Positions 19,907-62,767 of a DNA stretch of 64,000 nucleotides are shown here, piece by piece (within the stretch, counting starts at the first letter, position 1; each line of letters starts with the position of its first letter). Below the pieces are notes generated by a model. It was given only the letters and a program-made list of their open reading frames with translations, was not told the origin of the DNA and did not search any database. The position numbers and the translations under genes are program-made. The DNA comes from Haliotis rufescens (taxonomy: Eukaryota): NCBI RefSeq assembly GCF_023055435.1, contig NW_025964223.1, positions 5,022,001-5,086,000 of the forward strand, given 5' to 3'.

Positions 19907-19970
19907 TATATATACCCGACATGTACCAGTCCATCCACAACATTGTCCACTGATATCCAGAACTGCAAAG
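19907..19970 (+). promoter_or_regulatory. TATA box and non-coding exon 1 of peptide gene A1
   Basis: GCTATATATACCC (TATA at 19907), then a short exon ending GCAAAG|GTAGGT at 19970/19971. The same TATA motif and a near-identical donor lie upstream of A2, A3 and B2. Confidence 0.75.
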
Positions 19971-20189
19971 GTAGGTGTCTTTTTTATGAACGTGTATAAT
20001 ATCTATCCTAATAGTCCTCTGCTGTTTCGGTGTGATGCGAAAATTAATATTTGTATGTCCAATCAGGTAGTCGTGTTAAACCAATAAATATTGTATTTTC
20101 TGTTATGGTTATAATGTTGCTGTATTTAACAGCGGCGGTATAAATTAAATTACTGACAAACTGCGATCATAGTGATCCTCTATTTAGTG

Positions 20190-20546
20190 AGGTGAGGTGA
20201 GGTGAAATTGGGTTTAACGTCGCGTCCAAGATTATTGCACTTATATAGCGACGTGCATGCACGTGTATGTGTGTGTTTTGCTGCTTGTACTAGTCCGGAC
20301 TGATGCCGATTTATAGTGCTAGCTCACTGAGATACCATGCCGCAGTTTAACATGAATACCCCACTCAGACACAGTATACTGACTCCGAGCCGACCAGTCC
20401 TTGTTTTATCCCCTTAATGACGAGCGCCAGACAGGGTAACAACAAGTACAATCTTTTAACGTCTTTTTGTATGACGCGGCCCGGGCCGAACCCTGGACCT
20501 TCCGCTCTCCGGGCGGACGCTCTACCACAAGACCACGGAGGCGGTC
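20190..20546 (-). mobile_element. tRNA-derived SINE in intron 1 of A1, (CACCT)n tail
   Basis: Reverse strand begins GACCGCCTCCGTGGTCTTGTGGTAGAGCG...GGTTCGGCCC; 14-bp TSD TCCTCTATTTAGTG at 20176-20189 and 20547-20560; the empty site is visible in the paralogous segment near 31950-31970. Confidence 0.9.
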
Positions 20547-20785
20547 TCCTCTATTTAGTGGCCATTTACAATTTAGATCCAAATGCTGTAATGTATCTGT
20601 GCATATTACATATTGTGTTTAACTTGACAGGATAATCTGATTTTGAAGGATTGGTCCTAATCATAAAAAAAAGTTATTTTAAAAGCGAGTATTAGTCGTT
20701 CTCATGACGTGTTGTTAAATTGCTGGGACAAAGTGCTCACAACAACTTTTAAATGGATCACTCAAACTATCTTATATGTACCTAG

Positions 20786-23124
20786 ATGAAGATTGCCCTC
20801 GTCCTCCTGTTCCTGACTGCCATGGTGGCCCTGCCCGGAACCGATTCCTGGGGTATTCGTTTGCCACGTTTCAGGAGTATTGTACGTGCGGTTGGAGGTG
20901 CCGTCAGGCGCGTCGCTTCGACAGTAGTCAATGCCGGGAAGAAAGTTGTCTCAACTGTCAAAAAGGTTGGAGAAGCAATTAAATCTGGTGAGCGCATTTC
21001 TCTTGACAACAAGTGGTACTTTTGTGAAGGTTCTTAAGAGCAGGACATTTGTTATGAACGTAAATATGTTTGTCTGGCTAGTGATAGAATAAGGAGTATC
21101 CCCATTTTCTAATGTATTCCATAAGTATATTTTAATGTGAAGTTTACAAGATATACGGCATTTCCTTTGGATGTGAGGCCGGTCACATGGCCGCGTAACT
21201 GATGTTCATAAGTCTATGAACGAGACAATTGGACGTCCATACGTGTTTAACGAGATTGTATCTTGAATGACGTAAACACTGACGGAAACTCATTGGGAAT
21301 CTAAAGCGCAAATAAACACAGAAGCATTGTTTCTGATCATTTTGACCTTTCAATCTTGAAATCTGCATTTCGGCATACATTGGGCAGAGAGTTTGACTGC
21401 ATAATCGTTCACAAATACCCTCGCAGCGACCAATCAAAGTAAAACTAAACGAAAAAATGCACTTCTCAACCGTCACAGTATCGCCTCGATCCGTGTCAAG
21501 ACAGGCAGATACAGTCAGGTGCAATCTATGACTTTCCCTTAGTATCCATTTACAATCAACTTTCAAAGATCGGACCAATTGATCAATGATGACTAACACT
21601 TGTAATTGCCACAGGTTCATCAACAAATGCGGACATCTTTTCCGTCACGTTTATCGTGTCGTCCACGTACTGAATGTATATGTATTACAACGCGCTGTCA
21701 TTGTGACTTACGTACAAACCTATCTCATCTAATGATGACTCAAAGATATTTGAAGATGTTTGTTGTAAACAACCACAAACGATGTCACTGTAGAACAATG
21801 TAAGGATACATGAGCTCGTGCCACGTCTCCTGTCGAAGAACTGCTTCATTCCGTAAAACTTGTAGTTGTATGGATGTCAGTGTAAACATGAAGTCACACG
21901 TACTACATAAAAATCGTATATAGCTCGACATCCTTCGTCTTGAAAAATAGTGATATAAAAAATCATAACTGCCTTTCACTTTGAGTGAGTTCATTGGAGT
22001 ATAAACATTCATAGAGTGAGGATCAAACATTGTATGAACGTCTTCACAAGCTCCATTCCGTGCAAGCAGTTCATTATAAACTCACGTTGTTTTACCAAAA
22101 GAGATGTCTAGCGGCATCCAGGTGATAATAATATATAATCTATATATTTTCCGATAAGTGACAATGTATGGTTAGATTGAAACGGATGAATATCCACAAA
22201 AATGTCGAGCGCGTCCAGGTGAATGAGTCTTGTGTGGGTAGCTATCTATCTACATGAATACCTTGGATGATAAGAGCAATTATTTGAGAACTAAATATTA
22301 TCAATTAGAAGAGCTTTCAACACCGTCGTTAGAAACGTACATAATTTGGGATAGGTCGCAACTTATGCTTCGAAAGATAGGATAAGTAAGAACTTCCAAA
22401 GTGTGTTGCATGGTCTAGCTACCTGACATCTCATCCCAACTGTAGACCACACTTGTCGGGAGGTTATAAAATAGACTTGTACTTATTTCCATCACCAGGT
22501 AAACGAGACGTGAGCGAGTTTGATGTGGACGGCGACGGTCAAGTCAGTGACGACGAGATCATGATGGTGCTGGCAACCAGAGACGTGGATGACCTTGTCC
22601 AGGATGGTTACATCACAGGTAAGGGAGATAACCACTCTAGTGTAGAAGAGACTTCAAGTACCACTTTGAGTAGAAATATATAGAAATGTCATCATCAACG
22701 TCATCAACGTCGACATACTTAATTTCCACAATGGGCCCATCTATTCCTGGCATACATAGCAATAAGACCTTCTTGTGTTTCAAGAAGCAGACAAGGAAGA
22801 CATCAGCCTCTACCAGCGCCAAGTCCGGGAAGCTGAAGACCTCGATCTGGGTGAGACGTTAAACCCCAACATTAAAGTTGCAGAATACATATGCACATGC
22901 AAAGTGCATATGACTCAACTCACACACACCTCACCTCACATCTCCTTTTAATCTACACTATTTGTACATTCCTGATGATAGGCCATACCAATGATTTAGC
23001 AACTGATAATTTGGGTCAGGCGCTGAGGTGGAATTGAAATCCTCAATAGCTGTTGTGTAGTCACCCTAAATTCTCAATTAAATTGTAAACTCTTCTACAC
23101 ACCAACACACACCGATACACAATT

Positions 23125-23160
<36 letters not shown>

Positions 23161-23291
23161 GCACGCACGCACGCACGCAAGCACGTATGCACGCACGCAC
23201 GCATGCGCGCGCACACTGTGTAATAGACGATTTGTGTACATTCTCATATGATCGTTCTTTAATTTTATATTTATTTTCGCTTTCAGAATAA
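20786..23291 (+). CDS. Peptide gene A1: secreted cationic amphipathic peptide precursor with GKR site and acidic EF-hand propeptide (130 aa)
   Basis: Coding exons 20786-20987, 22499-22618, 22785-22850, 23287-23291 (GT-AG, all phase 1); AATAAA 23363-23368. Protein: MKIALVLLFLTAMVALPGTDS / WGIRLPRFRSIVRAVGGAVRRVASTVVNAGKKVVSTVKKVGEAIKS / GKR / DVSEFDVDGDGQVSDDEIMMVLATRDVDDLVQDGYITEADKEDISLYQRQVREAEDLDLE*. Confidence 0.88.
21140..22041. mobile_element. Non-coding interspersed repeat in intron 2 of A1, homologous to 2930-3856
   Basis: Long collinear similarity; it accounts for much of the 1.5-kb intron 2 of A1 versus 195 bp in A2 and A3. Confidence 0.7.
23128..23214. repeat. (CA)n/(CACG)n microsatellite in the last intron of A1
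   Basis: Seen directly. Confidence 0.9.
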
Positions 23292-23862
23292 CCGTGCTGA
23301 CAAGCGGAACTCAAGATGCCCAACTCATCTGTTATCCATGTAACAAGTAGAGTATGGACATAAATAAAGTCGTAAATAACAAATGTGTGTTTGTAATACT
23401 GGAAGTACTTCAAATGTAGTTAGGACCGCTGGTGTAGCACAGTGGCATAAGAGTTCATTCCTCGCGAATGGTCCGGTTTCGATTCCACACATGGCATGGG
23501 TACAGTGTGTGTAGCCAATGTCTGGTAGAATCCTACAAAAACGGCGTAAAAACATGCAACCTCACTCAAATTTGTTGTTTTGCTAACGAGTTAAAAAAAG
23601 AACCCTGAAGGTGAGTCTGAAGTGATGAACGCTGAAACCTGAAAACTTAAAATTCCCTTCCACTCACACCCTGATGTAACCGAAATACTGTTAAAATCGA
23701 AGTTAAACCAAACTCGCTCACCTCACCATCTTTTATTGAGTTTGTAATAGTGCTTTTCTCAACTTCCTTCCTATGTCTAATAAGTCTCTAAAGGAGTCAG
23801 TCAGCTTCTCTGGCTTCTCATGTTACCTGCACAGTGCCCTGGACAGTAACGCTGAACTGGTA

Positions 23863-24076
23863 NNNNNNNNNNNNNNNNNNNNNNNNNNNNNNNNNNNNNN
23901 NNNNNNNNNNNNNNNNNNNNNNNNNNNNNNNNNNNNNNNNNNNNNNNNNNNNNNNNNNNNNNNNNNNNNNNNNNNNNNNNNNNNNNNNNNNNNNNNNNNN
24001 NNNNNNNNNNNNNNNNNNNNNNNNNNNNNNNNNNNNNNNNNNNNNNNNNNNNNNNNNNNNNNNNNNNNNNNNNNNN
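23863..24076. other. Assembly gap (N run)
   Basis: Run of N. Confidence 1.
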
Positions 24077-25345
24077 ACAGCTGTTGAGGATTTGAATTCC
24101 ACCTCAGCGCCTTGTCGAAGTTATCAGTTGCCAAAATATCAGCATGGCCTATCATTAGTAATGTGCAAATAGTGCAGGTTAAAAGGTGAGTCATGATGGC
24201 ATTCCAAGCAAAATATGTTACTATAAACAAGTGTATGATATATTATATTGACACAGTACCTAGCTGTGAAATATAACCCAGGTCTTGGGAGCGATAACCG
24301 GTCGCCTTAACAGTTAGCCATTGAGTGTAAAGAATTATCGGCCTGTTTCACAAACATTCCAGCAACATCACGACGGGGACACCCTAGAAATGGGCTTCAC
24401 TGAGAAGCTGACGCTTCAACCATAATGCTACCTCACCGTCACTTATAAAAAAAGAAGATACATGAGAGTGAGTAAGCGGTGTCTGAAACCAGCAATACCC
24501 TAGTCACGATAGCTGACACCTAGAATAGGTACCACATAATGTATCAAAGTGAAAATCGAACCCTAATTATTCGGGTTGCCGAGAAAACGCTTTATATACT
24601 ATGTTACCACACCACTCTAAGTGGAAATATCAGCAACGGATGATTCAGACATCTGCCGGATGATTGGGATTGGTTCATTGAATATCTGTAACATGTCGCA
24701 ACAAAGAGCGTTTTACTTCCAGACGTTTTATAAGCGGACGTTCTCTACAGAATACGATATGCATTGACTATAACATATAAACGGACCATTAATAATATCT
24801 AATGTGCAATTTCCCAGTACGATATATGTCCGTGTCGTGGTTCATCGTTTTCATTGTTTTTATAGAGATAAGAAGTACACGAACAACTATGCGCTACACA
24901 AAGCAAAAGCTGCATAATTAAGTCAATCAGTATTTATTCAAGCGTCCGTAGACCTGTAGTACATATGACAGTGGGGTTGCACACAATTTAGCTATTATTT
25001 ACAAATTTGGTTCTATATAACAGTGCTTGGAATATATACACAGCCAAGTTTTGCATTGTTAATGTATTTAGCCTGTTTAACAGTTGCCGGAATTCCGCAA
25101 TATTCGGATCATTAAAGTAGTATACAGGAATATAGTTTTTCTCTCAGTGTAGTAAATGGACATACAGGTAAACAGTGGTATTAATTCTCTATGTCTTGGG
25201 TATTACACATTTAACATACTCGTTCTGACCTTGGGTTTTTTGTACATGGCCCACTCTCGATGCATAACTTATGAGATGAACATCGAAATCTTATCAATGA
25301 ATTACGATATTTCTTTATATTTACATAAAACAGATACTGTTCAGT

Positions 25346-25578: not shown

Positions 25579-25589
25579 TGTTCAGTGTG

Positions 25590-29996: not shown

Positions 29997-30365
29997 AGCC
30001 AAAATGTAGATTGACAAGACATATACCATATAGATATATAAATATATTAATATATTCAATAATATTTATATTAATATCTGTAAGCCTAAGCCAAAATGTA
30101 GATTGTCCAGAAATATGACATATGAATATATAAATATATTAATATATACAATAATATTTATATTAATATCTGTAGGCCAAAGCAAAAATATAGATTGTCC
30201 AGAAATATGCTATATAAATATATAAATATATAAATATATCAATATATACAATAACATTTATATTAATATCTGTAAGCTAAAGCCAAAATGTAGATTGTCC
30301 AGAAATATGCTATAAAAACATATAAATATATTAATATATACAATAATATTTATATTAATATCTGT
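29997..30365. repeat. AT-rich ~90-bp tandem repeat (4 copies; 3 copies at 49355-49607)
   Basis: Unit AGCCAAAATGTAGATTGTCCAGAAATAT...ATATTAATATCTGTA is repeated. Confidence 0.85.
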
Positions 30366-30675
30366 ACTCACAAACATGACACACTTCATGAGGGCTATCT
30401 ACAAACTGTCATTATTTTGTCTCCAATATGTCAACGTTAGTTAAATTCGTCTGCAAATATCAATGTGTTAATGCCCTTAACAGTTTATATATTTCATGCA
30501 ATGAAGTTAAGAAATAAATGGACATTTGACGTAAACAATAAAGCATTATTTCAGTAAATCCACACATATTCATACTGTATGCCTGTGACCTTTCAGTATT
30601 TCTGCAATAAAAACTTTACTTGACCTCCAACCGTCAACTTTCCTTTGATAACGAAAAACGTGATGTTAAACCCAT

Positions 30676-30791: not shown

Positions 30792-31335
30792 GTCGAGTAA
30801 TATGCTAGCAGCTCAAACCTTTGGTTTCTACATATCACAACTTTGAGGAACAATTACGTATGGTCTTTCTACCACGATTTTACAGATCGGCATACAACTA
30901 TTGCTCAATTTTTTATCAGTATTCAGGGCCTTACTAAAGCTTTTAAACAGTTTTATCGAAGATATCTTGAGGACATTTCCAGATTTAATGCATCAGTGAC
31001 ATAAAATATGTCCGATGCAATTACCTTTTATGACTTGTACCATATGTTCCTGTGGGTTTTGTTCAGGTGGGCCCTTGCCTTTTCATGCGTTTGTGACGGG
31101 TGACACCGGCCGGGGTAGGATAGGCTCACATTTTCGCGAGCATCTGGCCTCATCACCATTAGATAGTGATTCATAAACAAATTAATTCAGGGTTCATCTC
31201 GGTGACACATATGAATCACACTGCCAGTCCCACGCTATGAAGACTATTAACTGAGTTGTCAGATGGCTGGCGAGATAATGTCAGAAAGATCATAGCATCC
31301 AGATTTGGTGCGTGTGACCATCAGCACATCCATGC

Positions 31336-31401
31336 TATATATACCCAACATGTACCAGTCAATCCCCAACATTGTCCACTGATATCCAGAACTATCCAAA
31401 G
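31336..31401 (+). promoter_or_regulatory. TATA box and non-coding exon 1 of A2
   Basis: GCTATATATACCC; donor CAAAG|GTAGGT at 31401/31402. Confidence 0.75.
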
Positions 31402-32189
31402 GTAGGTGTCTTTTTTTATGAACGTGTATAATATTTATCCTGTTCGTCCTCTGCTATTTCAGTCCAATGCAAACATGAAATGTACTTCAAGAAAATAATT
31501 ATGTGTATGTCCAAATTGGTACCTACAGTCGGTCGTGATTTACCAATATATATTACAATGGCTGTAGTTGGCAGAGTTGTGATGTAATAAACTGAATCAA
31601 ATCAGTGTTATTTACAAGAGTCGGTGTCAACGGAATTTCATTAAGTTATTGTCAAAATGATATCATAGTGATCCACTGTCAAGTGTTCATTAACAATTAG
31701 GCCTAGACGGTGTAATTACTGGTCTCTGAGTAAATTACATATTGTGTTTTGAGATGTCAGGATAATCTGGTTTTGTTGGATTCGTCCTAATCATAAACTG
31801 GTAATTTGGGGACGTGTCATTTTAATGACGTGTTGTTAAATTGCTCGGACAAAGTGCTCACAACTCTTAAATGGATCATTCCAAAATGATTCCATGTACT
31901 CGTACCTAGATGAAGATCGCCCTCGTCCTCCTGTTCCTGAAATCATAGTGATCCTCTGTTCAATGGCCATTCACAATTTAGACCCAAACGCTGTAATTTA
32001 TCTATGCATTTATCATATTGTGTTTAACTTGACAGGATAATCTGGGTTTGAAGGATTGGTCCTAATCATAAAAAAGTTATTTTAAAGGCGAGTATTATTC
32101 ATTCTAATGACGTGTTGTTAAATTGCTGGGACAAAGTGCTCACAACAACTCTTAAATGGATCATTCCAAACTATCTTATATGTACCTAG

Positions 32190-33546
32190 ATGAAGATCGC
32201 CCTCGTCCTCCTGTTCCTGACTGCCATGGTGGCCCTGCCCGGAACCGATTCCTGGGGTATTCGTTTGCCTCGTTTCAGGAGTATTGTACGTACAGTTGGA
32301 GGTGCCGTCAGACGCGTCGCTTCGAAGGTAGTCTCCACTGTCAAAAAGGTTGGAGATGCAATTAAATCCGGTAAGCGCATTTCTCGTGACAAGGGGTATA
32401 TTGTGAAATTGTTTGAGAGAACGCCATTTGTTATAAAGGTAAATATTTTGGGATAGGTGACAACCGAAGTTCATCTCATAGTCCTAGTCAGGCTAGCTAA
32501 AATCTAACCACGCTGTGCTTTGTTGGGAAGCCAAAAAATAAAAACGTAACTATTTTCATGAACAGGTAAACGAGACGTGAGTGAGTTTGACGTGGACGGC
32601 GACGGTCAAGTCAGTGACGACGAGATCATGATGGTGCTGGCAACCAGAGATGTGGATGACCTTGTCCAGGATGGTTACGTAACAGGTAAGGGAGATAACC
32701 ACTCTCGCGTAGAAGAGTCACGAGCCTTCTTACTTTAAGTACTACTCAAATTTAGGGAGGAGTAATTTAAATATATTTTTTTCATCTATGTGAAAGGAAG
32801 ATATTTTATTTGCATAATAGGCGCAACTGTTTGAATTCCATGGCATACAAAGCTATAAAGTCGTCTCGTTGTGGTTCCAGAATCAGACAAGGAAGACATC
32901 AGCCTCTACCAGCGTCACGTCCGTGAAGATGCAGACCTCGAGATGGGTGAGACGTTTAGCCCTACATGATAGTTGTAGAGTCAATATACATACGTTAACA
33001 TTCAACAGGATGGAACATGGTTTCAGTTAAATATCACATATTTAGGCATTAACTACTAGTATCTGATTTGAAAATGGGATTGATGTCCATTTACATATAT
33101 GCATATAACATTTCATTGATCTTTTCGTAAAATGTAAACACGTGACAGTATGTCTTAAACACGTGAACATGGAGTGTTACTGATTTTAAGATAAGTCCAT
33201 TAAAATTATATCAAACGTATGGACAACATTCCATAACCTTATATTTTCACAACAATTTCTAAATGTTTGCTCATTTCTTAAACTGGGCCGATCCTGTGGA
33301 CAAAATGAATATACCTAAATAATGCTAAATGCTTTTTAGTCTTGTTTTGTTATGTTCCTCAAAGATTGTAAATGTTCCAAACGTTGCCTGCAGGTATCAG
33401 AAATTCTTTTTCAACCCATATAAATACAGTGTCAATCAATACACATTCGCACACTGGTTTATCTCATTAATATCTGTGTAAACTTGATGATGTGTGTACA
33501 TCCTTTACATAGTATTGACAAATATCTATTATCGGTTTCAGAATAA
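32190..33546 (+). CDS. Peptide gene A2 precursor (123 aa)
   Basis: Exons 32190-32370, 32566-32685, 32881-32946, 33542-33546; AATAAA 33615-33620. Mature peptide WGIRLPRFRSIVRTVGGAVRRVASKVVSTVKKVGDAIKS, then GKR, then DVSEFDVDGDGQVSDDEIMMVLATRDVDDLVQDGYVTESDKEDISLYQRHVREDADLEME*. Confidence 0.85.
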
Positions 33547-41384: not shown

Positions 41385-41625
41385 TTTTAGCTGGTGCCTG
41401 GTCCTGAGCAGCAAAAAGAAAGCTTCCTGTTTCAAAATCAACATTGACATTGAGATTATGTCCAACGCCCTGGCTCGTTTAAGAAAACTGTGGAATGCCT
41501 TGTTTTCACCACGAGTCTTGACATGCTTCACAAGAGTATAATCAGACAAAGACACGTATGCAAATGTGAACAATAAAATTCTGCCATGAACAGCATCCAC
41601 TTTAATCAATCGACGCCCTCTCATT
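41385..41625 (-). mobile_element. Fragment of the same R4/Dong-like element as 13300-14505
   Basis: The reverse complement matches ~13310-13470 and ~13665-13700 (GAAAACAAGGC.TTCCACAGTTTTCTTAAACGAG; TTTGCTGCTCAGGACCAG). Confidence 0.75.
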
Positions 41626-41965
41626 ATGAATGGTAAATATATTACAAAGACAATAACAATCTTGAATTGTTCTTAAGCACAACTGACCCATATAACATTT
41701 ATTTACTTATATACTATAATGTACACATATGCGCTGTTTATAACTTATTGTTCTATATTTCTATGAATTTGGAACATATTATACACACATGTAGAAAGCA
41801 TTAAACTAGTATTGTATTCTTAATATGTGATCAAAAAGTCGATCTAATAATGTCATGATAATGAATAATATTTGAGGAAAAACATGAAAAAGCAACTACA
41901 TTGAATCATCAGTGTTTGTAATAATTTTCCTAATCATGAAATATTTTCTACTCGGTTCTACACAG

Positions 41966-43921: not shown

Positions 43922-44351
43922 AGCGTTTCTGAAGACTCCTTGGCACCACCCCATACCCCGGATCCTGTTCGAAATGTGGAATTGATAACATGAATAAAGT
44001 CAGGGCATTATAAACAATGAATTTGTAATTTGTGGTTAATTACCAATGTCGACGTACATTGTACGCAGAGCATCTAAGCAGACTTAGCCACGCGCTGACA
44101 AGAACAAGTGCTCCAGCGTTCACTCCACTGTCAGCGTATTGACGGACGCCTGAGGTTTCCAGTTGACTGCTTCACAATTGAGTAATCTGATTTCTTGGCT
44201 TTTATTCTTATTGTTTAACGCCGCACTCAGCAATATTCCAGCTATACGACAGCTTTCTGTACTAGAATCAGCTTGGAAAGTGCACAGATCGAAGATAAAG
44301 AGCAATAAGTTCATTCTTATCCTGAAATTGTCATACTCTGTGAGCTACGGG

Positions 44352-47400: not shown

Positions 47401-50400
47401 TCTGTCTTTTTGTGTTAATAAAAGCAACAAAACCCTTTCCATATTCATAAGGCACATTTGTAATTTCAAAAAGGACATGTCTTTGTATATTTTATCAGAT
47501 ATACATTGTCTCTTCACCAATCCATTTCTTGTAAGTAATCTTTCCTGAATATAATATTGTTTAAATCACGTAATTATATCAGCAGGTCATTGGCCTGAGT
47601 AGAACAAATAAAATTTGAAATATCATATTATAATTCACACTGAATCTCACACGCACCATTGTCAGTCCTGTGAAAATCTATTCATCACCACTTGGTGCCT
47701 GTCAAATCAGAGAATACACATCCGTGACCTTCAGCTATACTTACACTACCTTGGTGTCTATGATAGCTTGCAGCTATCATCTGTCGACCACACTTGGCAT
47801 AGTCCACAATGGAGATGGATTTGTGTAGCAGGTAACGTCCAAGATATAATTGATAATATAAATTGAAACAATTAACAAATGATTAATTATTACAAAAGCT
47901 TATTGATAGATTTAATGCAGCTAAAACAGCTTAAATGCAGATGTTAGGCAGCAATCAAACTGTACTGTGTTATGCAAATTGTCTGAGTGGCGGGTGCTAC
48001 TGGTAGAGCAGGTCATGCTTAGCCTTTTCGCGAACTCCTGGTGTCATCACTGACTTTCAGTGATCCATTCATGTCATAATCACCGTTTTGCCATTCACAG
48101 CCAATCAAATCCGTTTTGACAGATATTAGAGACTGATTATTCTCTGGGATTAACATTCTATTTTAAGAGTCTAAGAGCATGTAGATCTATGTAGAAACAT
48201 TTAAACTATGTCTTTACACTTACACCTAGATACTTTTAGAATAGCTTTGCTGTTATTTGCTGATGACGTTGTAATGAGTTCGAGGATTACAAAGTCACAT
48301 AAATTTGCTAGAACAATATCATGCAAAATCGTGTTAAAGTGTTAGCACAAAAACGAGGGTATTTGAAAACGGATGTACTTCAGCAAATCGAGAGCTGGTT
48401 AAACAAAGACAGGGCCATGGGTGTAGTTATAAGCTGGGTCGAGTAAACTGTCCTTGCATTTTCTTTCAATACTATCTAGAACCCTAGCCAATCCAAATAC
48501 TTGTTTGGATACTAAAGAACTTCAGATTTATCGACAGTGTACACTTCAACGTGCTCTTCAAAATCTTTCATCAAAATTTCCAGTTCTTTTATATGGAGCA
48601 GAGGTATTGGGTTTACATTGGTCAGACTTTATCGACAGAGTACATTTATTTAAGAAATAAACGACGAGTTATCGTTTATCGAGTGGTTTATTCTCCCTGC
48701 AGTGTTTAATTGTACGCTAAATAACGACCACCAGTTGTTTGTTTCTAATATGAGGTCATATCAACATTATTTACAGCCTCTTTAAGGATGATGATAAAAT
48801 GTACATTAAATATGTACCCGCATTTTAATAATGATGACTCCCTCAATAGAATCCGACCTCGACAATGTCGGACAAGTCTACTACATGCACAGGTGGATAT
48901 TTCCCGCATACTCTCACAATCACCACGTCGATTACCTGTATCTTTTCTCCCAATACCGATTGCCATATCTCTCCCGCTTTAGGATGTGATCGTCGGGCAT
49001 CTGTTTACCTGCGTTGCCTAGACACATCGATGGGAAACAACTCACTTGGAACTCCCCACTCAAAAATAACCTCGTTCGATATACGATTTCATCAAGTTGC
49101 GAGCGCATGTTCTAATCTGAAGAAATGACGTCATGATAGAACAATGTTTTATCTTGAAATAAACCACACTTCGGTCTTCATTGTGTCTTTGCGATTTATC
49201 GCGTAGCTATCTAATACAAAAGAGTATAAGTTCAGTTATATAGCCATCAGTGTTATGATATGGTTTTTTTTTGTTTAAAGAAAATGGAACGCAAACCTGC
49301 GTTTCGTCTGTTTAAATGTTGGTCAACAAGTAAGATTCGGGATATGCACGGCATAGCCAAACTGTAGATTGTCCAGAAATATACTATATAAATATATTAA
49401 TATATACAATAATATTTATATTAATATCTGTAGGCCAAAGTCAAAATGTAGATTGTCCAGAAATATACTATATAAATATATTAATATATACAATAATATT
49501 TATATTAATATCTGTAAGCCAAAGCCAAAATGTAGATTGTCCAGAAATATGCTATAAAAATATGTAAATATATTAATATGTTCAATTATATTTATATTAA
49601 TATCTGTACTCACAAACATAACACACTTCATGAGGCTATCTACAAAATGTCATTATTTTGTCTCCAATATGTCAACGTTAATTAAATTCGTCTGCAAATA
49701 TCAATGTGTTAATGCACTTAACAGTTTATATATTTCGTGCAATGAAGTTAAGAAATAAGTGGACGTTTGACATAAACAACTAAGCATCATTTCAGTAAAT
49801 CTACTATCCACACATATTTATACTGTATGCCTGTGACCTTTCAGTATTTCTGCAATAAAAACTTTACTTGACATCCAACCGTCAACTTTCCTTTGATAAC
49901 GAAAAACGCGATGTTAAACCCTTTTCACCTCACCTCATCTCACCTCGCCTCACTTCACCTCACCTCACCTCACCTCACCTCACCTTCGCACCTCACCTTA
50001 CCTCCACACCTCACCTCATCTATAATACTAGTAATATAGCAGCAGCTCAAACCTTTGGTTTCTACATATGGCAACTTTGAGGAACAATTAAGTATGTTCT
50101 TTCTACCACGATTTCAAAGATCGTCATACAACTATTGTTCATTTTTTTATCAGTATTCAGGGCCTTACTAAAGCTTTTGAACAGTATTATCGAAGATATC
50201 TTGAGGACATTTCCAGATTTAATGCATCAGTGACATAAAATATGTCCGATGCAATTACCTATTATGACTTGTACCATATGTTCCCTTGGGTTTTGTTCAG
50301 GTGGGCCCCTGCGTTTTCATGTGTTTGTGACGGGTGACACCGGCCGGTTAGGATAGGCTCACATTTTCGCGAGCATCTGGCCTCATCACCATTGGATAGT

Positions 50401-50567
50401 GATTCATAAACAAATTAATTCAGGGTTCATCTCGGTGACACATATGAATCACACTGCCTGTCCCACGCTATGAAGGTATTAACTGAGTCGTCAGATGGCT
50501 TCCCAGATAATGTCAGAAAGATCATTGCATCCGGATATGGTGCGTGTTTCCATCAACACATCCATGC

Positions 50568-50631
50568 TATATATACCCGACATGTACCAGTTCATCCACA
50601 ACATTGTCCACTGATATCCAGAACAGCAAAG
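50568..50631 (+). promoter_or_regulatory. TATA box and non-coding exon 1 of A3
   Basis: GCTATATATACCC; donor GCAAAG|GTAGGT at 50631/50632. Confidence 0.75.
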
Positions 50632-51144: not shown

Positions 51145-52503
51145 ATGAAGATCGCCCTCGTCCTCCTGTTCCTGACTGCCATGGTGGCCCTGCCCGGAAC
51201 CGATTCCTGGGGTATTCGTTTGCCTCGTTTCAGGAGTATTGTACGTGCAGTTGGAGGTGCCGTCAGACGCGTCGCTTCGAAAGTAGTCTCAACTGTCAAA
51301 AAGGTTGGAGCAGCAATTAAATCCGGTAAGCGCATTTCTCGTGACAAGGAGTATATTGAGAAATTGTTTGAGAGAACGCCATTTGTTATAAAGGTAAATA
51401 TTTGGGGATAGGTGACAACCGGAGTTTATCTCATAGTCCTAGTCAGGCTAGCTAAAATCTAACCACGGTGTGCTTTGTTGGGAAGCCAAAAAATACAAAC
51501 GTCACTATTTTCGTGAACAGGTAAACGAGACGTGAGTGAGTTTGACGTGGACGGCGACGGTCAAGTCAGTGACGACGAGATCATGATGATGCTGGCAACC
51601 AGAGATGTGGATGAGCTTGTCCAGGATGGTTACATCACAGGTAAGGGAGATAACCACTCTCGCGTAGAAGAGTCACGTGCCTTCTTACTTCAAGTACTAC
51701 TCAAATTTAGGGAGGAGTAATTTAAATATATTTTTTTCATCTATGTGAAAGGAAGATATTTTATTTGCATAATAGGCGCAACTGTTTGAATTCCATGGCA
51801 TACAAAGCTATTAGGTGGTCTCGTTGTGGTTCCAGCATCAGACAAGGAAGACATCAGCCTCTACCAGCGTCACGTCCGGGAAGATGCAGACCTCGAGATG
51901 GGTGAGACGTTAAGCCCTACATCATAGTTGTAGAGTCAATATACATACGTTAACATTCAACATGATGGAACATGGTTTCAGTTAAATGTCACATATTAAG
52001 CCATTAACTACTAGTATCTGATTTGAAAATGGGATTGATGTCCATTTACATATATGCATATAACATTTCATTGATCTGTTCGTAAAATGTAAACACGTAA
52101 TGGTATGTCTTAAACACGTGAACATGGAGTGTTACTGATTTTAAGATAAGTCCATTAAAAATGATATCAAACGTATTGACAACATTCCATAACCTTATAC
52201 TTTCACAACAATTTCTAAATGTTTGCTCATTTCTTAAACTGGGCCGATCCTGTGGGACAAAATGAATATACCTAGATAATGCTAAATGCTTTTGAGTCTT
52301 GTTTTGTTATGTTCCTCAAAGATTGTAAATGTTCCAAACGTTGCCTGCAAGTATCAGAAATTCTTTTTCAACCTATATAAATACAATGTCAATCAATACA
52401 CATACACACACTGGTTTATCTCATTAATATCTGTGTAAACTTGATGATTTGTGTACATCCTTTACATAGTATTGACAAATATCTATTATCGGTTTCAGAA
52501 TAA
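51145..52503 (+). CDS. Peptide gene A3 precursor (123 aa)
   Basis: Exons 51145-51325, 51521-51640, 51836-51901, 52499-52503; AATAAA 52572-52577. Mature peptide WGIRLPRFRSIVRAVGGAVRRVASKVVSTVKKVGAAIKS, then GKR, then DVSEFDVDGDGQVSDDEIMMMLATRDVDELVQDGYITASDKEDISLYQRHVREDADLEME*. Confidence 0.88.
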
Positions 52504-54439
52504 TCTTGTGGACAAGCGAAACCCAATGTGCTCAACTCCTCTATCTGTGTAACAAGAAGAGTATGAACATAAATAAAGTCACAAATAGCGAATGTGTATT
52601 TTTTGTATTGATAATACTTAAAATGTAATACTTAGAATTTGTGAAGCTACTTTCTGGTACCCCAGCCGCTGGAATACTGGAATGTTCCTGAAAGTGGCGA
52701 AAACACATACATCCTCACGGAAATGTTCTGACGAGCTTGAGGCATGACGTGTTGATGATAACGCTTGCCAGGGATAGTCATCGAAACTTCACTTACTTCA
52801 GTAATTGAAACATGTGAAGAGAAAGCAGTAGTTGACTGAACACGTGTCACCGTGAGTAAGTGTCACTGTATGGGTGTATATGACTGTATGAACAAATAAT
52901 GCCCTTTAGAAATCGGTCACTTGTAACAAATGGTTTTTTGTTACACTTTCTGAGTAAAGTACAAATTGTAGTTCTTTTGGGATTCCATCTAGGCTTCGAA
53001 CCCAAACTCAGATTGAGGCACCTAATCGGAGTCTTACACAGTAGAATCTATTTCTAAGGTTAACCTTTTGGCCTTATAAGTGCCATTATTTAATATGTCA
53101 CTTACACTAACTTTTTTTTATTAATTTAAACAATTGATGTAATCATGCTTACCTATGTTAGGTATAACGCACGTGTAACTAGACATTCCTTACAATCGAC
53201 TCTGCTTGATGTAGATATTTGGATATGGAATGTTACATTAACATCCATCAATGATTACTCTTTTCCTTTGGATTCTCCAACAACTACCGAAGAGCCTAAA
53301 TTTTGGCTCAATTGTGTCACTAAGAGCATGGAGATACACGTCAAATACACCATAGAAGCACAGGGTGTAGTTATTGCATGAAGTATATAAAAGCATAGGG
53401 GAGACTTGAGTTATGAATTGGCAGATAGGCTATTACAGATATGCAGTACTGCAATGTGACTATCAGTGTACCAGGATGCTAACACATAATGGGGAGAGAA
53501 ATCACTGTTTCGCATTGTGGTCCGAAAGCATCACACATTAACCTCAGGAATAGTTTCTACTGTGTAAGAGTCCACATGTCACTATGTATTATATCAACTG
53601 ATCCTAACAAGGTTATCTCTTTAGTAAAGATACCCCTCTATTCTCTAGGACATCCTTTCTCCAATCACATAACATGGAAATACTTGTAAAAAATGCAATC
53701 CACAGGGTAGAATCTGATATTTGAACGCTAAAGTGACCTGTGAACCTGACCTGCGCATTCAATCTTGAGATCATATACATAATGGGCTTGTGCAAAAGAC
53801 AATCCTGACCTGAAGAGAGGTATTGCCTTCATCAGCAACAAATATAACATATGTCTTTATTTATATTTCGACTTGGGGTCGTGATTTCATGTGGTGCGAT
53901 AACATGCAACCCCTGCCTCCTGTTGTGTAACCCCTGCATCCAGGCATGCACCCCACTGATAGTGGTGATACCAGCTGTTCACGAAAAGGTTAGCGAATCC
54001 TGCTCAACTGGTGTCACCCGTCACAAACACGTGCAAAGGCAAGTCAATTGTTCATCTGAAATAGACTCGAGAACATACGGTACAAGTCAAAACAGAGAAT
54101 TACATTTGATTGCATCATGTTTGACACTGTTGCGTCAAATTTTGAAATGCCCCCCACATGCCAAGGATAAGACTTTTCGATAGTTTTACTGAGGCCTTGA
54201 ATGTTTTAACCTTGATCAAACAATTTTGGAGTCTTTCTACTATCTAAATATGCTATATAATTGTCCATATATATATCAGATTTGTTAGAGGCGCATAAAT
54301 AGCGGCAACAATTAATGTACAATTAAATAACTTTGGAATACTTTAGCTATCCTCACTATAAAGAATTTGAAAGATACCAGTTGCTTGAATAATGAGAATA
54401 AGAGAGTGTTTCGTATCAAATCATGATCGCAGCATGGTA

Positions 54440-57187: not shown

Positions 57188-57324
57188 NNNNNNNNNNNNN
57201 NNNNNNNNNNNNNNNNNNNNNNNNNNNNNNNNNNNNNNNNNNNNNNNNNNNNNNNNNNNNNNNNNNNNNNNNNNNNNNNNNNNNNNNNNNNNNNNNNNNN
57301 NNNNNNNNNNNNNNNNNNNNNNNN
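57188..57324. other. Assembly gap (N run)
   Basis: Run of N. Confidence 1.
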
Positions 57325-58834
57325 TTAATGACGCACTCAGCAATATACTAGCCATTTGAAGGGTGTCTGTAAGTAATTGAGTGGTTGATATCGTTTTGGA
57401 ATTTGGAATCAATAAAACTAAGCAGAGAGTTCACAATAACGTGTGAAAGGAACATAGGATTTGATTGGACAAAAATAGAATTGTGAATCAGTTTCTTAAT
57501 TTTGAATCACTTAATAGTCAAATAACCTCAAGATTAATCTTTCAGCGCTGTTAAATCCGTACACATTAAATCCTCAAAACAGTAAGGAGTTTACAGTAAT
57601 CTGCTCCAGAACTAACAACAGGTAATGGGACTGTTGTGTATCGGGTCAACGACAATCACTTATTTATTTGCACATTCAAGTCGACTGCATGTGTTAGAGA
57701 AACGTGTTTAGGTTATAAAAAGGTTTTTATGGCTGCAACTGGTACGCTTATTGACATCCGGTCACGACTTTCACCATGACGTTCGTCATACACAGCCAGA
57801 AGCCTCATCATAAAAGTGTTTATGGTACATTACAGTGTTATTTAGCTTTTGGTGCTTGTAGAGAACAACATGTGCATCCTTCATTAGACAAAAAAAATGA
57901 CACAACAATACGACACACGACAAATCGTGTACTCATTTTATTATAATGTATAATATCACCGAAGGCATATCTTCAAGGGTTAACACTTAGTAAGTGGATA
58001 ATAAATCACTTGTAAATCCAAAAATCTGGCTACAGCATCGGTAGCTGATCGCCTCCATATGGAGCCCACATGATTCATCTCCCACGTAGAAAGAATTACA
58101 GAATCAATAATTAAGCATAAACAGCCGTTCAATATTAGAAATATATTTTATGAATATCTAAAAGTCAAGATATCGTTGTTAAGTTTAATTTATTGTCGAA
58201 TGAACCAGCACAATAATTGCATAAATAAAAGCGACAAAATCATTTCCATAATCATAAGAAATCTGTGCTACAAGCAGAGTCCGATGAACGATTCGACCCG
58301 ATGTTGTTTACTCAACACAGGTGCGTAAAAAGTATTCTGAACATTGTAAATAATATTTACAGATTAAAATATAGAAATGCCGCAAAGGGAGTTCGGGTGA
58401 TCCTGGCGCAGTCAGGCTGCCTAGTCAAACCTAACAAGAAAAACTTCAGAGAATGTGAGGACTTACCAACACTGCAGCCTTCTGCATTACCCAGATTGCC
58501 AAAGGGCTTTGTTCCTGGTCGCAGACCCGGGTACTCTCCCAATGACAGACTTTGTTTGTATATTTCTTTGAATTAGGCTACCCGACCGCCCCTGGAAAAA
58601 CATGAAAAAGCATTTAATGTTCCTGTTCGGGTGGGATGGTAACACAACTTAAATTTGTTCAAATACCTAAATTGGCTAAATTATTGTTGGATATATTGTG
58701 TGAAATACTACACATGCATACCCCCAAGGAACGCCAACCCACACAGACCGGTGATTTTTCACCTTTGTAATATTGACATGTGAAAACACCTGAAGGTAAA
58801 CATGTCGTCAGGTGTCATGTAATTACTGGCACGC

Positions 58835-58899
58835 TATATATACCCCACTCGGAATTACATTTGTACAATCCTTCGTCATTTAGCATTCAACTTGCAAAG
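58835..58899 (+). promoter_or_regulatory. TATA box and non-coding exon 1 of B2
   Basis: GCTATATATACCC (shared with the A genes); donor GCAAAG|GTAAAT at 58899/58900. Confidence 0.72.
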
Positions 58900-59594
58900 G
58901 TAAATATGTTTTATACTAATGTGTCATTGATGACCAGGGTTAGAATCATACTTCCGCAGCATTTCATCATTGATCGTAAGAGGCGACTACTCTTCTTCGT
59001 ATGGTCAGACATTTCCCATGAATGTCATGGCGTGGGTCGTTGCTTATTTGTTTGTAGTACTGGTTTTCCTTAAAGAGATTCATTTAGACTCAAATAGACC
59101 GCCGGGATATAGCTGGAATATTGCTGACTGTGGCATTAAATAACATTCACTCATTCGATAGGGCTTCCCCCTCGACCACCCCTGTGGCCTAGTGGTAGAG
59201 CGTCCGCCCAGACAGCGGTAGGTTCGGGCTGTGATTTTGTATCAAGGCTAAATATTTTTTGTCACCTTCAGCTAAAATTCCAGATTATTTTTTAATTTAT
59301 AACTGGGATGTTGATTTATTAAGGTAAAAAACACTTTACAACAATGTCTTCATTTTTCAACAATCTAAAGTATAATTATTTTTTCAAACATTTTCGGGGA
59401 CAATATATTTTTTTTGTCAATGTCAAATCCATAACACAGAGCCGACATTCGACGTACAGTGTGTCGATGCAGGACACAGGATACGTACATCGTATTTCTT
59501 AACATATAAGACCCTGATCATCTACTACATTGAATCATCAGTGTTTGTAATTATTGTCCTAATCATGAAATATTTGCGACTCGGTTCTACACAG

Positions 59595-61533
59595 ATGAAG
59601 ATCGCACTCGTTCTCCTGGTCTTGTCTGTCGTGGTGGCCCTGCCCGGGGCAGATTCCTGGGGAATAAGAAGAATAGTTCGTGATGTGGCCAGAACGGCGA
59701 CAAGGGTTGCCCGTACTGTCACGAACACGGCTTCAAGGGTTGTACGTACCGTTGGCAGAAGGCTTGTTGTTGGTGAGTAGGTTGTTTCTTGTATACCATA
59801 TTACATCGACACAATCTTGGCTAACCGTGCCCACGATAGTCCCCCATTACTCGTCCCCGGATGACGTGGTCTGCGCTCACCGTTTGCCTGGTTCAAACAA
59901 GATTATTTACAGGCAGTCCTCATAAAGCTGGAATAATACAGACTGGGGAATTAAACAACATTCAGTTTCACACTGAAGCGGAATCATGTAGTGTCGGGTA
60001 GAAATGGTGGTGTAGGAAAGTTGTTTTCTAAATTCTGTTTTCAAATTAATTAGCTACAAATATAATGTGTCAGCTTGTTGTGCAGATGGAATGACCGGAA
60101 CAAGTGTTAGGGAACATCGTATTCAAAATAAGGAATATCAAAATATTAAAGCTTCAAGACGAACAGGAAATCTATGCATAGAAATCTACTCTTTTGTATT
60201 TATGCATAGGTAACTTTTTGAAAGGGAAGGGGCCCAAATAAGCAAAATGCTCTCTCAGTCAATTTTAGCGCCTACACCAACATACGTCTGTGTGAGGGGA
60301 TCGTGGATGTGTGTGTGTGTGTGGGTGTGGGGGTGGCCGGATCCCTTGAAGAAACGATCTCAAGTACAGCTGATGTTGCAGGCATTGTCTCAGGGCTCTC
60401 AAGTATCTTTGAATTATATAACGTTTGTACATACCTAGGTAAGCGAGATATGACTGCGGGCGACGTTGATGATGACGTTGATGTCAGTGACGAGGAGATA
60501 CTGCAGACACTGGCAACTAGAGACGTGGAGGACCTCATCGAGAACAGCTTCATCTCAGGTAAAGGATGCAAATACCTTCTTGGGGGTACTGTCTCGTTTT
60601 GGCGCATACACGGCAAAGCGTGGACCAAGCTGTGATAAACTGTCGAATTGGAGTAATATTCAGTTCAGTCAATCATCTCCTCCTCCTGCCATCCATGGCA
60701 GACACTTAATTCATCAGGTGTAAATTCGGCAAGCAATGGTAATACCGTGAATGGTTCTCACTCAATTGGGTTCCAAAAAACCATGACATCACATGTAGTC
60801 CTTTTGTTTAAAGGGGCAGACAATGATTACTTCAGTCTCCACCAACGTCAACGCAGAGAGGATTTGGATCACGAGGAAGGTAACGTATTTCCCTTGATGC
60901 AATGATGCATTCCTGGTCTAAACTACCTGAATACTAAGAAAGCCATGGCATGGTACTTATATATCACCGGTGGTTACATATACTCAGCCCAACGGTTGCT
61001 AGGCATATGCATTGGAAGGAATCGCATTCTTTTCAGTACAGTAGTGGCATTGATCATGCAGTCAAACACACGGTACATTGGCTTTTGGCGTGTTGAACGT
61101 ACATGACTCCTCTGTTGACCTACGATATGGACTACGTATACTGAGGGCATTCTCGATTGTCCAGTGTATGTCTCCATTCTATTGGACCAATTTGCCATAC
61201 ACTGATTCGTGTCGGAAGTGACGTCACCAACCCCATCGTGTCAATAACCAAGTTTATTCTCTCATTTGTGTCATTGGGTTGGACGACTATTTCTAGAATC
61301 GTGTCATTCTAATTGTTCTCAGAATGATGATATGGAACGTGGCGTATTGGCCAAGAGTATTTATCAAATAATCGATAATCGAGGATGATCTGAGAGGTAA
61401 GTGAATGGTTTTTGACTTTGAAGTCAGCAATGTTCCAGCTATATCACGGGGCAACTGGGTATGATAATACGCGACAAACAGGCGGAGATGACATTCATGG
61501 ATACAGTTCTTATCTCCCTTTTTTCCAGAGTGA
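59595..61533 (+). CDS. Peptide gene B2 precursor (122 aa)
   Basis: Exons 59595-59772, 60439-60558, 60814-60879, 61529-61533; AATAAA 61605-61610. Mature peptide WGIRRIVRDVARTATRVARTVTNTASRVVRTVGRRLVV, then GKR, then DMTAGDVDDDVDVSDEEILQTLATRDVEDLIENSFISGADNDYFSLHQRQRREDLDHEEE*. Confidence 0.87.
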
Positions 61534-62767
61534 AGCGTTTCTGAAGACTCCTTGTTACCATCCCATACCCCGGATCCTGTTCGAAATGTGAAATTGATAA
61601 CATGAATAAAGTCAGGGCATTATAAACAATGAATTTGTAATTTGTGGTTAATTACCAATGTCGACGTACATTGTACGCAGAGCATCTTAGCAGACTTAGC
61701 CACGCGCTGACAAGAACAAGTGCTCTGGCGTTCACTTCACTGTCAGCATATTGACGGACTTCTGAGGTTTCCGGTTAACTGCTTCACAATTGAGTAATCT
61801 GATTTCTTGGCTTGTATTCTTGTTGTTTAACGCCGCAATCAGCAATATTCCAGCTATATGACAGCTTTCTGTAGATAATTGAGTCTGGACCAGACAATCC
61901 TGTGATTCCTGGGAAGCAACTCTGCACAACGTATTGTTGCACCTTAGACAATGTGGCCACCCGCGTCGCAAAATAAATACTAGAATCAGCTTGGAAAGTG
62001 CAAAGATCGAAGATAAAGAGCAATAAGTTCATTCTTATCCTGAAATTGTCATACTCTGTGAGCTACGGGTGTGTGCAAATATATATATTCGTGCTACGTG
62101 TATTAACGTCATTCGGGACAAAATGACCAAAAAGGTTAAATTTAGCACATAACCTTACAGTATGAGGAACACAAAAGGCCAAAAATGGACATGAGTGATT
62201 GAGTGAATGCTTACTGAAAACGTCAACACAGATTCCACAAGACATAAAGGGCAAAGTAGTGATGGACATTTACGAATGGATCACTAAACATCATTGATGT
62301 CGATGTTAAAACAAGAAGCAGTGTCGTCACTGATTTTAAGTGATCCATTCATATAACTTTCACCGCTAGTTTGCCTTTGTCGCCTCATGGAAAAGGGGCA
62401 TGACAGTAGTAGTAGTAGTAGTCGCCCAATGGAATTTGTTTTGGTGGATAATCGAGACTGGTTATTCTCTGGTGTTGACGGGGTTTTTTTATATAGTCGT
62501 CAACTAGTGATGACGTTGCCTTTTTCGCTGATGTTACTCTTTCGGTGTGGGTAATAAAATCTATCGTGTAGAAATAAGAAATTAAGAAAATAATAAGAAA
62601 TAAATGTTTGCAATGTAGAGCTAGGTCAACTGTCGATTTAACCGAACTAAATTGAATTTGGAACGGAAAGGGTAGCGTTAGATTCTACTCAGTTCTCGTT
62701 TGTCAGTCACCGGTTTTCCAATCATTATAACCACATGTGACTAAAACATCTGATTTGACTGCGACCC

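Follow-up and report, generated by a model that had tools for sequence, protein, structure and literature searches.

Molluscs have very few linear, cysteine-free host-defence peptides. One group of this kind has been described in mytilid mussels, the myticalins and modiocalins (PMC5577615; PMC12294457), the former being named as the sole linear Cys-free family in mussels (PMC12294457). Myticalin genes are split into three exons by two introns, the second of them in phase 1, and encode the dibasic site in exon 2 (PMC5577615). For abalone, molluscidin, macins and fragments of larger proteins are listed as antimicrobials (PMC11767717; PMC5577615). A second relevant system is that of the mytimycins of mussels, in which the use of an EF-hand is still unexplained (PMC8004829). 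Finally, the secreted HCS2/pleurin precursors of the gastropods Helix, Aplysia and Lottia, which are described from neurons, carry one to four short amidated peptides (PRXamides) each, together with an EF-hand motif at the C-terminus (PMC8398477; PMC7749107).

In the window (the whole 64-kb stretch of Haliotis rufescens DNA that was analysed), five plus-strand genes of common design follow one another in the order A1, A2, B1, A3, B2. The first-pass annotation had taken these five as the family, a count that proved too low: the full array holds 11 copies over ~140 kb and runs past both window ends, and additional related clusters occur in other parts of the genome. Each gene starts with a non-coding exon 1, and the ATG is the first base of exon 2, which encodes a signal peptide and a Cys-free cationic peptide. 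All coding-exon junctions in the five genes are formed by GT-AG introns in phase 1, one of which interrupts the Gly codon of a Gly-Lys-Arg motif (G/GT; slashes mark exon boundaries). The coding exons downstream of exon 2 invariably measure 120, 66 and 5 nt in the five genes, and length variation is confined to the peptide exon (202, 181, 151, 181 and 178 nt in A1, A2, B1, A3 and B2, respectively). The last exon (ag/AATAA or ag/AGTGA) adds Glu and then a stop, with AATAAA 73-76 nt farther downstream in all five. Upstream of A1, A2, A3 and B2 lies an identical 13-mer, GCTATATATACCC (TATA box), within an 88%-conserved block.

In A1, this promoter block (19905-19917) is followed by the non-coding exon 1 (19935-19970), whose start is approximate because the transcription start was placed from the TATA spacing, and whose donor at 19970 is the conserved CAAAG/GTAGGT. 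Exon 2 (20786-20987, corresponding to P0006), with an acceptor AG immediately before the ATG and the donor G/GTGAGC, encodes the 21-aa signal peptide, the 46-aa cationic peptide and the first base of the Gly codon. The remainder of Gly, Lys-Arg and EF-hand loop 1 are encoded by the 120-nt exon 3 (22499-22618; Pfam EF-hand_1, E 2.2e-5, 24.1 bits), the acidic tail with a degenerate second loop/helix by the 66-nt exon 4 (22785-22850), and the end of the frame by the last exon (23287-23390, end approximate), which contains CDS 23287-23291 (Glu, TAA) and the 3'-UTR, with AATAAA at 23363. A conserved island around this last exon (23267-23418) matches A2. An intergenic assembly gap after A1 (23863-24076, unstranded) starts ~495 nt beyond its poly(A) signal. 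A2 comprises the TATA block and exon 1 (31334-31401, donor after 31401), exon 2 with a signal peptide and a 39-aa peptide (32190-32370, corresponding to P0003), exon 3 (32566-32685, 120 nt), exon 4 (32881-32946, 66 nt) and a last exon (33542-33640, end approximate) with CDS 33542-33546 (Glu, TAA) and AATAAA at 33615; its intron 1 additionally carries a duplicated fragment of the start of exon 2 (31910-31940), consisting of the first 10 codons followed by stops. A3 shows the same arrangement: TATA block and exon 1 at 50566-50631, exon 2 with a signal peptide and a 39-aa peptide at 51145-51325 (P0001, XP_046353979.1), exon 3 at 51521-51640 (120 nt), exon 4 at 51836-51901 (66 nt) and a last exon at 52499-52600 (end approximate) with CDS 52499-52503 (Glu, TAA) and AATAAA at 52572.

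The type B genes follow this layout from exon 2 onwards. B2 has its TATA block and exon 1 at 58833-58899 (donor CAAAG/GTAAAT), exon 2 with a signal peptide and a 38-aa peptide at 59595-59772, exon 3 at 60439-60558 (120 nt), exon 4 at 60814-60879 (66 nt) and a last exon at 61529-61630 (end approximate) with CDS 61529-61533 (Glu, TGA) and AATAAA at 61605. A second intergenic assembly gap (57188-57324, unstranded) ends ~1.5 kb before the B2 TATA box, and homology between B1 and B2 restarts at 57325, right after it. B1 encodes a signal peptide and a 29-aa Arg/Val-rich peptide in exon 2 (41966-42116), followed by exon 3 (42531-42650, 120 nt; its loop lacks Gly at position 6 and gives no Pfam match), exon 4 (43151-43216, 66 nt) and a last exon (43917-44020, end approximate) with CDS 43917-43921 (Glu, TGA) and AATAAA at 43993. 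In place of a promoter and exon 1, however, B1 is preceded by repeat-derived plus-strand DNA without a TATA block (40930-41895), which resembles window positions 13312-14209 in reverse (73-79% match). In B2, B3 and B4, unlike B1, the TATA block is retained and lies 730-770 nt upstream of the ATG, and B1 has probably been silenced through promoter loss.

The missing promoter of B1, together with a copy outside the window that lacks the signal peptide, could suggest that the array has no biological product and consists of non-functional duplicates or annotation artefacts. Such an explanation is extremely improbable, as 9 of the 11 copies have neither defect and the TATA block is present at 7 of these 9, the exceptions being A0 and A5, for which no exact match was found in the 1.5 kb searched upstream. 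Those of the nine that were examined have open frames and canonical splice sites. Further evidence against it comes from orthologues in three Haliotis species, from homologues with the same layout in Gigantopelta, and from purifying selection (see below). The H. rufescens RefSeq proteins P0001, P0003 and P0006 are identical at every residue, terminal Glu included, to the spliced models of A3, A2 and A1, respectively, an independent match to gene models whose exons, peptide lengths, charges and A1 tail counts, as given in the first-pass annotation, were confirmed by recomputation. The same identity means that the genes are already in the NCBI annotation, at odds with the earlier view that they are easy to miss. 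The window genes are real, intact, spliced genes.

The predicted mature peptides comprise 46, 39, 29, 39 and 38 aa (A1, A2, B1, A3 and B2), contain no Cys and carry a net charge of +9 or +10 in all five window genes. Type A and type B signal peptides are identical at 16 of 21 residues, and signal cleavage is inferred to occur before a conserved Trp, from the -3/-1 rule and conservation. Ahead of the Gly, the single long peptide of each precursor ends in IKS, VVV or LVV, and the order of signal peptide, peptide and Gly followed by a dibasic site is that of an amidated precursor; in support of the processing and amidation signal proposed earlier, G-K-R is invariant across all aligned Haliotis and Gigantopelta members. 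The proposal of an amphipathic helix was likewise supported by charge and periodicity: the hydrophobic moment has its maximum at 100 degrees in four of the peptides and at 95 degrees in B2, exceeds that of shuffled sequences (p 0.000-0.015) and reaches 0.795 over the whole B1 peptide. In line with these results, AlphaFold2 models residues 27-59 of P0001 as one long helix.

The reading that we favour, with a probability of roughly 60%, is that the genes form a secreted prepropeptide superfamily giving rise to amphipathic-helix host-defence peptides, antimicrobial or cytolytic, with the acidic EF-hand tail as their keeper. Signal peptidase would cut on the N-terminal side of the conserved Trp and a proprotein convertase after Lys-Arg; once a carboxypeptidase had removed the basic residues, peptidylglycine amidating monooxygenase would use the Gly to form a C-terminal amide. 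The released product would be an amphipathic helix of 29-46 aa that attacks membranes, and the tail would neutralise and hold the peptide through the calcium-rich secretory pathway.

Gly-Lys-Arg is also the classic neuropeptide amidation signal, and the conserved N-terminal Trp and a C-terminal amide could serve as receptor determinants. Because HCS2/pleurin provides a gastropod precedent for a precursor with both amidated peptides and an EF-hand motif at the C-terminus (PMC8398477; PMC7749107), processing of the precursors into signalling peptides (neuropeptides, hormones or pheromones) is a live alternative. Nevertheless, we consider this unlikely: the peptides are 29-46 aa long with charges of +9/+10, vary in length and sequence among recent tandem copies, and show neither a PRXamide ending nor repeated short peptides. 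Moreover, neuropeptide genes are as a rule conserved and single-copy, whereas here 11 copies form one array and further clusters lie elsewhere in the genome.

The tail of A1 spans 60 aa with 21 D/E versus 4 K/R. Tested against the canonical 12-residue EF-hand loop, D-x-D-x-D-G-x-I/V-x-x-x-E (Pfam PF00036/PF13499), the type A loop DVDGDGQVSDDE fits positions 1, 3, 5, 6, 8 and 12, and the type B loop, DIDDDVDVSDKE or DVDDDVDVSDEE, lacks the Gly at position 6. Pfam EF-hand scores for the type A genes of the window reach 24.1 bits for the exon and 22.4 bits for P0001, against a gathering cut-off of 25.4, and type B tails give no Pfam match; P0016, a homologue from Gigantopelta, exceeds the Pfam threshold with 39 bits over two stretches. 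The family profile A4 aligns with calmodulin lobes across both loops (positions 57/67 to 112/115, E 6.3e-8 to ~6e-6), the second-best PDB match being chain 8aht_A of calmodulin (E 6.3e-8). Gigantopelta has a canonical second loop and Haliotis a degenerate one. The EF-hand character claimed for the tail in the first-pass annotation is supported by the type A loop, the Gigantopelta scores and the calmodulin match, and profile comparison shows the 60-aa tail as a compact, predicted EF-hand pair.

As we read the calmodulin alignment, Gly-Lys-Arg would lie inside the entering helix of the first EF-hand. Since this helix would consist of the peptide C-terminus and the cleavage site, cleavage would uncouple peptide and tail. 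This bears on the possibility that the acidic EF-hand module is itself the functional secreted product, for example one that binds calcium in mucus, in the extrapallial space or during shell formation, with the cationic segment as a removable pro- or targeting piece. Although the tail is the part best conserved between Haliotis and Gigantopelta, is under purifying selection and is calmodulin-like by profile, this role is decidedly doubtful: on the same reading, the first EF-hand would be left without its entering helix once cleaved, the second loop of Haliotis is degenerate, type B lacks the loop Gly, and there would be no explanation for the helical, amphipathic periodicity of the cationic segment.

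Structural modelling weakly suggests that the tail may bind the peptide. The tail-peptide complex prediction scored 0.34, versus 0.12 for the best of three controls; this mark, which 51 of 78 solved complexes attained, along with 2 of 108 mismatched pairs, was attained at 0.60 or under by only 5 of the 78, but by all 4 passing mismatches. At least 72% of contacts agreed between the runs, and the partner pLDDT was at least 61. The AlphaFold2 model of P0001 itself has a mean pLDDT of 70.5; Foldseek returned no match to it at E <= 0.001, many of the weak rows being calmodulin-peptide complexes, and the best Z in VIA-align, 4.8, is at noise level. A tentative extension of the host-defence reading, which we rate as rather improbable as a whole, is that the tail could act as a calmodulin-like, calcium-dependent safety catch, clamping the helix in the calcium-rich secretory pathway and timing cleavage at the site, and that this module of peptide and EF-hand could be an old, greatly expanded effector system shared by vetigastropod and neomphaline snails, serving abalone as their chief stock of linear antimicrobials.

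The evolutionary pattern sets the parts of the precursor apart. Between types A and B, pS is 0.21 in the signal peptide, 0.57 in the tail and 0.81 in the peptide; the signal peptide is conserved far above the remaining precursor, and length changes only within the peptide. For exon 3, dN/dS is 0.13-0.32, except for 0.91 between the two B subtypes. Judged by these comparisons, the tail is under constraint, and purifying selection acts on both signal peptide and tail. In the peptide region dN/dS is 0.36-0.56, that is, below 1, and therefore does not demonstrate positive selection. Tandem copies with pseudogenes, a conserved signal and a variable peptide form a pattern typical of effector families. 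Abalone are also known for fast-evolving cationic sperm proteins, such as lysin and sp18, and a fast-diversifying, cationic, predicted membrane-active family in this genus could function in gamete interaction or fusion. There is only a very slim chance of such a reproductive role, considering that known reproductive proteins showed no similarity in any search made, that a distant vent snail has the family too, and that dN/dS is below 1.

Homologues were found in H. cracherodii, H. rubra and the vent snail Gigantopelta aegis. The tail, the W at +1, GKRD and the terminal Glu are kept as far as Gigantopelta, in some members of which the charge is only weakly cationic. These weakly cationic members, the sub-threshold Pfam scores, the type B loop without Gly or Pfam match, the fold searches without a significant match, the peptide-region dN/dS below 1 and the pleurin precedent count against the host-defence reading. 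Apart from generic EF-hand proteins, a profile search of 1.84 billion representatives retrieved only relatives from Haliotis and Gigantopelta. The family proteins bear no database name other than "uncharacterized protein LOC...", and literature searches by motif, locus ID and topic found no published description, in agreement with the earlier statement that no named family could be recognised. The genes look like an undescribed gastropod antimicrobial-peptide superfamily, as far as their sequences indicate. Abalone are farmed and prone to disease, and a large family in them that is conserved and yet diversifying would add a new set of immune effectors and markers, provide natural amphipathic peptide templates and offer a testable case of an EF-hand domain as the pro-region of a membrane-active peptide.

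Among known systems, piscidins, styelins/clavanins and nematode cecropins combine an amphipathic cationic helix, frequently amidated, with an acidic propiece after the mature peptide. To our knowledge, these propieces are not EF-hands, and no sequence relation to these families was found in the searches made. The calmodulin-melittin complex (PDB 8aht) likewise pairs acidic EF-hands with a basic amphipathic helix, but in abalone the parts are joined in one secreted chain with a single EF-hand pair, for which binding is weakly supported by modelling. Compared by description, the abalone precursors differ from pleurin in carrying one long variable cationic peptide without a PRX-amide ending and in being encoded by many tandem genes. 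Mytimycin precursors share with them a dibasic site followed by an anionic EF-hand C-terminal extension, as well as a non-coding exon 1 (PMC8004829), but the mature mytimycin is an antifungal peptide of 54 aa with 12 Cys, in contrast to the predicted Cys-free helix of abalone; in this comparison, made by description only, no mytimycin-like protein was recognised among the significant profile matches, which were not checked by name. Myticalins, for which the profile search of 1.84 billion representatives gave no similarity and which were otherwise compared by description, differ in that most are Pro/Arg-rich and not helical, that their extension is of low complexity rather than an EF-hand pair, and that their hosts are bivalves instead of gastropods; the abalone genes, moreover, have five exons, with a phase-1 intron splitting the Gly codon before Lys-Arg. 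[quoted passage not shown] In both, exon 1 is non-coding, exon 2 opens with the ATG and the peptide region is followed by a phase-1 intron, and both form multigene clusters with pseudogenes, one myticalin pseudogene having likewise lost its signal peptide.

A six-frame scan of the 64-kb window (G+C ~39%) yields five plus-strand copies of an acidic frame beginning Lys-Arg-Asp and six starts of one signal peptide, of which the one at 31910 extends for just 10 codons before stop codons appear. With exon borders placed by canonical splice signals, the same structure is found in all five genes (A1, A2 and A3 of type A, B1 and B2 of type B): the ATG is the first base past the acceptor AG; at the end of the peptide exon, G|GTRAG splits the Gly codon in phase 1; the 120-nt exon opens GT-AAR-CGA and completes Gly-Lys-Arg; the 66-nt exon that follows is also phase 1; the final exon supplies two bases and the stop (Glu-stop); and an AATAAA lies 73-76 nt farther 3'. 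The 13-mer GCTATATATACCC is identical 5' of A1, A2, A3 and B2, and together with a donor CAAAG|GTA ~65 nt downstream it marks out a TATA box and a short, non-coding first exon. Both assembly gaps (N runs at 23863-24076 and 57188-57324) are intergenic. For the lengths and charges of the peptides, the identity of the signal peptides and the composition of the tail, the values agree throughout with those of the first-pass annotation.

The A3 open frame, taken from its ATG into the intron (88 aa), retrieves nine database proteins of 123-137 aa from H. rufescens, H. cracherodii and H. rubra, all named "uncharacterized protein". Exons were searched singly, and full-length comparisons were made with the database proteins themselves (P0001 and others). 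The 67-aa exon alone returned no match in the protein search, a length-window effect, since the 88-aa frame did retrieve the RefSeq proteins. The spliced models proposed for A3, A2 and A1 proved identical, including the terminal Glu, to the H. rufescens RefSeq proteins P0001, P0003 and P0006, and this 100% identity marks the window as abalone DNA, most likely that of H. rufescens. RefSeq therefore already holds these gene models, and the genes, previously described as easy to miss, are not hidden. The predicted splice junctions rest on the RefSeq models and on conservation.

A search of the whole genome (1.33 Gb, 615 contigs), queried with the tail and peptide exons in turn, recovers 11 copies each time on one contig at 5.015-5.154 Mb, seven of type A and four of type B. 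Hence, the five-gene cluster first described stands for the window, but the full array is larger. Outside the window, a type A copy (L019 / L004, G000:C445 ~5143432) has lost its signal-peptide codons by deletion and keeps the rest of its frame; it is likely a pseudogene and resembles a myticalin pseudogene (PMC5577615). At the promoter/exon-1 site of B1, ~965 nt (40930-41895) are replaced by DNA resembling the repeat at 13312-14209 (73-79% identity, reverse orientation), a dispersed repeat, so that B1 is probably silent even though its frame is open. The TATA block is kept in B2 and in B3 and B4, two type B copies outside the window. That the abalone gene copies as a whole would be non-functional is a much less likely alternative to the host-defence reading given below.

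Repeats of other kinds also occur in the window. AT-rich tandem repeats of 84-92 nt lie 5' of A2 and A3 (29997-30366 and 49355-49573), a CA-type microsatellite lies 3' of A1 (~23100-23250), and a 22-nt repeat array and a 100-nt duplication are found at 15068-15781 and 7167-7366, respectively. A 27-nt tandem repeat at 8839-10613 (65.7 copies, 87% match) is covered by a minus-strand reading frame (~8300-11500), in which it translates into ~65 repeats of a nine-residue unit (type S-P-N-T-C-D-V-E-M) with additional acidic repeats on either side; the region probably represents one exon of a repetitive protein rich in Cys, Asp and Glu.

More distant relatives are present on other contigs and farther along the array contig. 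They combine a similar signal peptide with an Arg-rich peptide whose predicted mature N-terminus is Trp and, wherever the next exon fell inside the fetched locus, also have Gly-Lys-Arg and a canonical EF-hand exon. Paralogue clusters were seen at L027, L025/L026 (contigs C379, C585) and L012 (C445 ~38.8 Mb). In L027 and L025/L026 the signal peptide ends ...SDA and is followed by Trp and a poly-Arg peptide, and in L012, L027 and L026 the exon with Gly-Lys-Arg encodes a canonical loop, DKNKDGNIDQSE or DLNGDGQIDQSE. The locus L024 (G000:C51:48322-51507, minus strand) is a single open frame of 250 codons that begins with a signal peptide of this kind and Trp, after which a very long Lys/Arg/Pro-rich stretch leads to an acidic region where an EF-hand loop is not evident; L024, to which L033 on the same contig (C51) is related, may represent a diverged lineage within the superfamily.

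Beyond abalone, a profile searched against 1.84 billion representative proteins returns only four family clusters, namely Haliotis types A and B and two from Gigantopelta aegis; the remaining matches are ordinary EF-hand proteins. In this vent snail, one chromosome-sized contig carries five or more paralogues. Trp +1, Gly-Lys-Arg-Asp, the loop positions, a Thr-Arg-Asp motif and the C-terminal Glu are invariant or nearly so in Haliotis and Gigantopelta.

Divergence between types A and B is unevenly distributed along the gene. Their introns cannot be aligned, the signal-peptide codons retain 85-88% DNA identity and the tail exon ~72%, and synonymous difference rises from 0.21 for the signal peptide to 0.57 for the tail and 0.81 for the peptide. 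No amino-acid change separates the signal peptides of type A, and within this type dN/dS is 0.13-0.17 in tail exon 3 and 0.36-0.56 in the peptide region; the latter values, from non-independent pairwise comparisons, show no positive selection. Length varies in the peptide exon only. The abalone genes fit the conserved-signal, variable-effector pattern of secreted effector families; a reproductive role for the peptides is a much less likely explanation. Within intron 1 of A2, the segment 31682-31940 duplicates the region immediately 5' of exon 2, including the 10-codon signal-peptide fragment and its stops. The sequence 5' of A3 aligns with the first A2 copy and that 5' of A1 with the second, suggesting that A2 arose by unequal exchange.

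The peptides of the five window genes contain no Cys and have a net charge of +9 or +10. In four of the five, the hydrophobic moment has its maximum at 100 degrees per residue (in B2, at 95 degrees); at 100 degrees it exceeds that of shuffled versions (p 0.000-0.015); for B1 it is 0.795 over the whole 29-aa peptide. An AlphaFold2 model of P0001, of middling confidence, folds residues 27-59 into a single helix. The peptide exons gave only chance-level rows in Pfam, and a PDB sequence search with the peptide exon gave no match. The top score in the ESM Atlas (0.76) is under the level where a match is meaningful. With a probability of roughly 0.6, the abalone precursor would be a host-defence prepropeptide giving rise to a membrane-active amphipathic helix. 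From the sequence features we infer that it would be secreted and cleaved after Lys-Arg, that the released peptide would be trimmed and amidated to become the membrane-active helix, and that the acidic EF-hand tail would serve to neutralise, chaperone or sort it within the calcium-rich secretory pathway. The main competing explanation, that these are precursors of signalling peptides, draws on the gastropod HCS2/pleurin gene, which likewise couples amidated peptides with an EF-hand motif, a likeness of precursors drawn from published descriptions; however, the abalone peptides differ from neuropeptides in size, charge, variability and copy number.

In type A the tail carries a canonical EF-hand loop five residues past Lys-Arg, and its Pfam score (24.1 bits) falls slightly short of the 25.4-bit threshold; in type B the loop Gly is lost and there is no Pfam score. 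The homologous Gigantopelta tails are above the Pfam threshold with two loops, and a whole-family profile matches calmodulin lobes over both loops (E 6e-8 to ~6e-6). In our reading of this sequence alignment, the entering helix of the first EF-hand would correspond to the C-terminal residues of the cationic peptide plus Gly-Lys-Arg. Foldseek and VIA-align found no significant match to the whole predicted model, itself of middling confidence. A predicted complex of tail, peptide and calcium gives weak support for binding between the two halves. It scores 0.34, against 0.12 for the best of three controls; this mark was reached by 51 of the 78 solved complexes and by 2 of 108 mismatched pairs, and at <=0.60 by just 5 of those 78 and by all four passing mismatches. 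At least 72% of contacts agree across runs, with a partner pLDDT of at least 61. A much less likely alternative is that a calcium-binding tail would itself be the functional product.

A description of the abalone family was not found in the searchable literature (by motifs, RefSeq locus IDs and topics), outside which most subscription journals lie. The family, a gastropod linear cationic, putatively amidated peptide with an EF-hand pair as its anionic propiece, is annotated but uncharacterised. Mytimycins have a dibasic site and an EF-hand extension, as the abalone genes do, but are Cys-rich, and are set apart by description. Myticalins, likewise set apart by description, have no detectable similarity to the abalone family in the profile search and differ in their three exons and low-complexity tail, but share with it the precursor logic, a non-coding exon 1, an ATG opening exon 2 and an intron in phase 1 that follows the peptide region.
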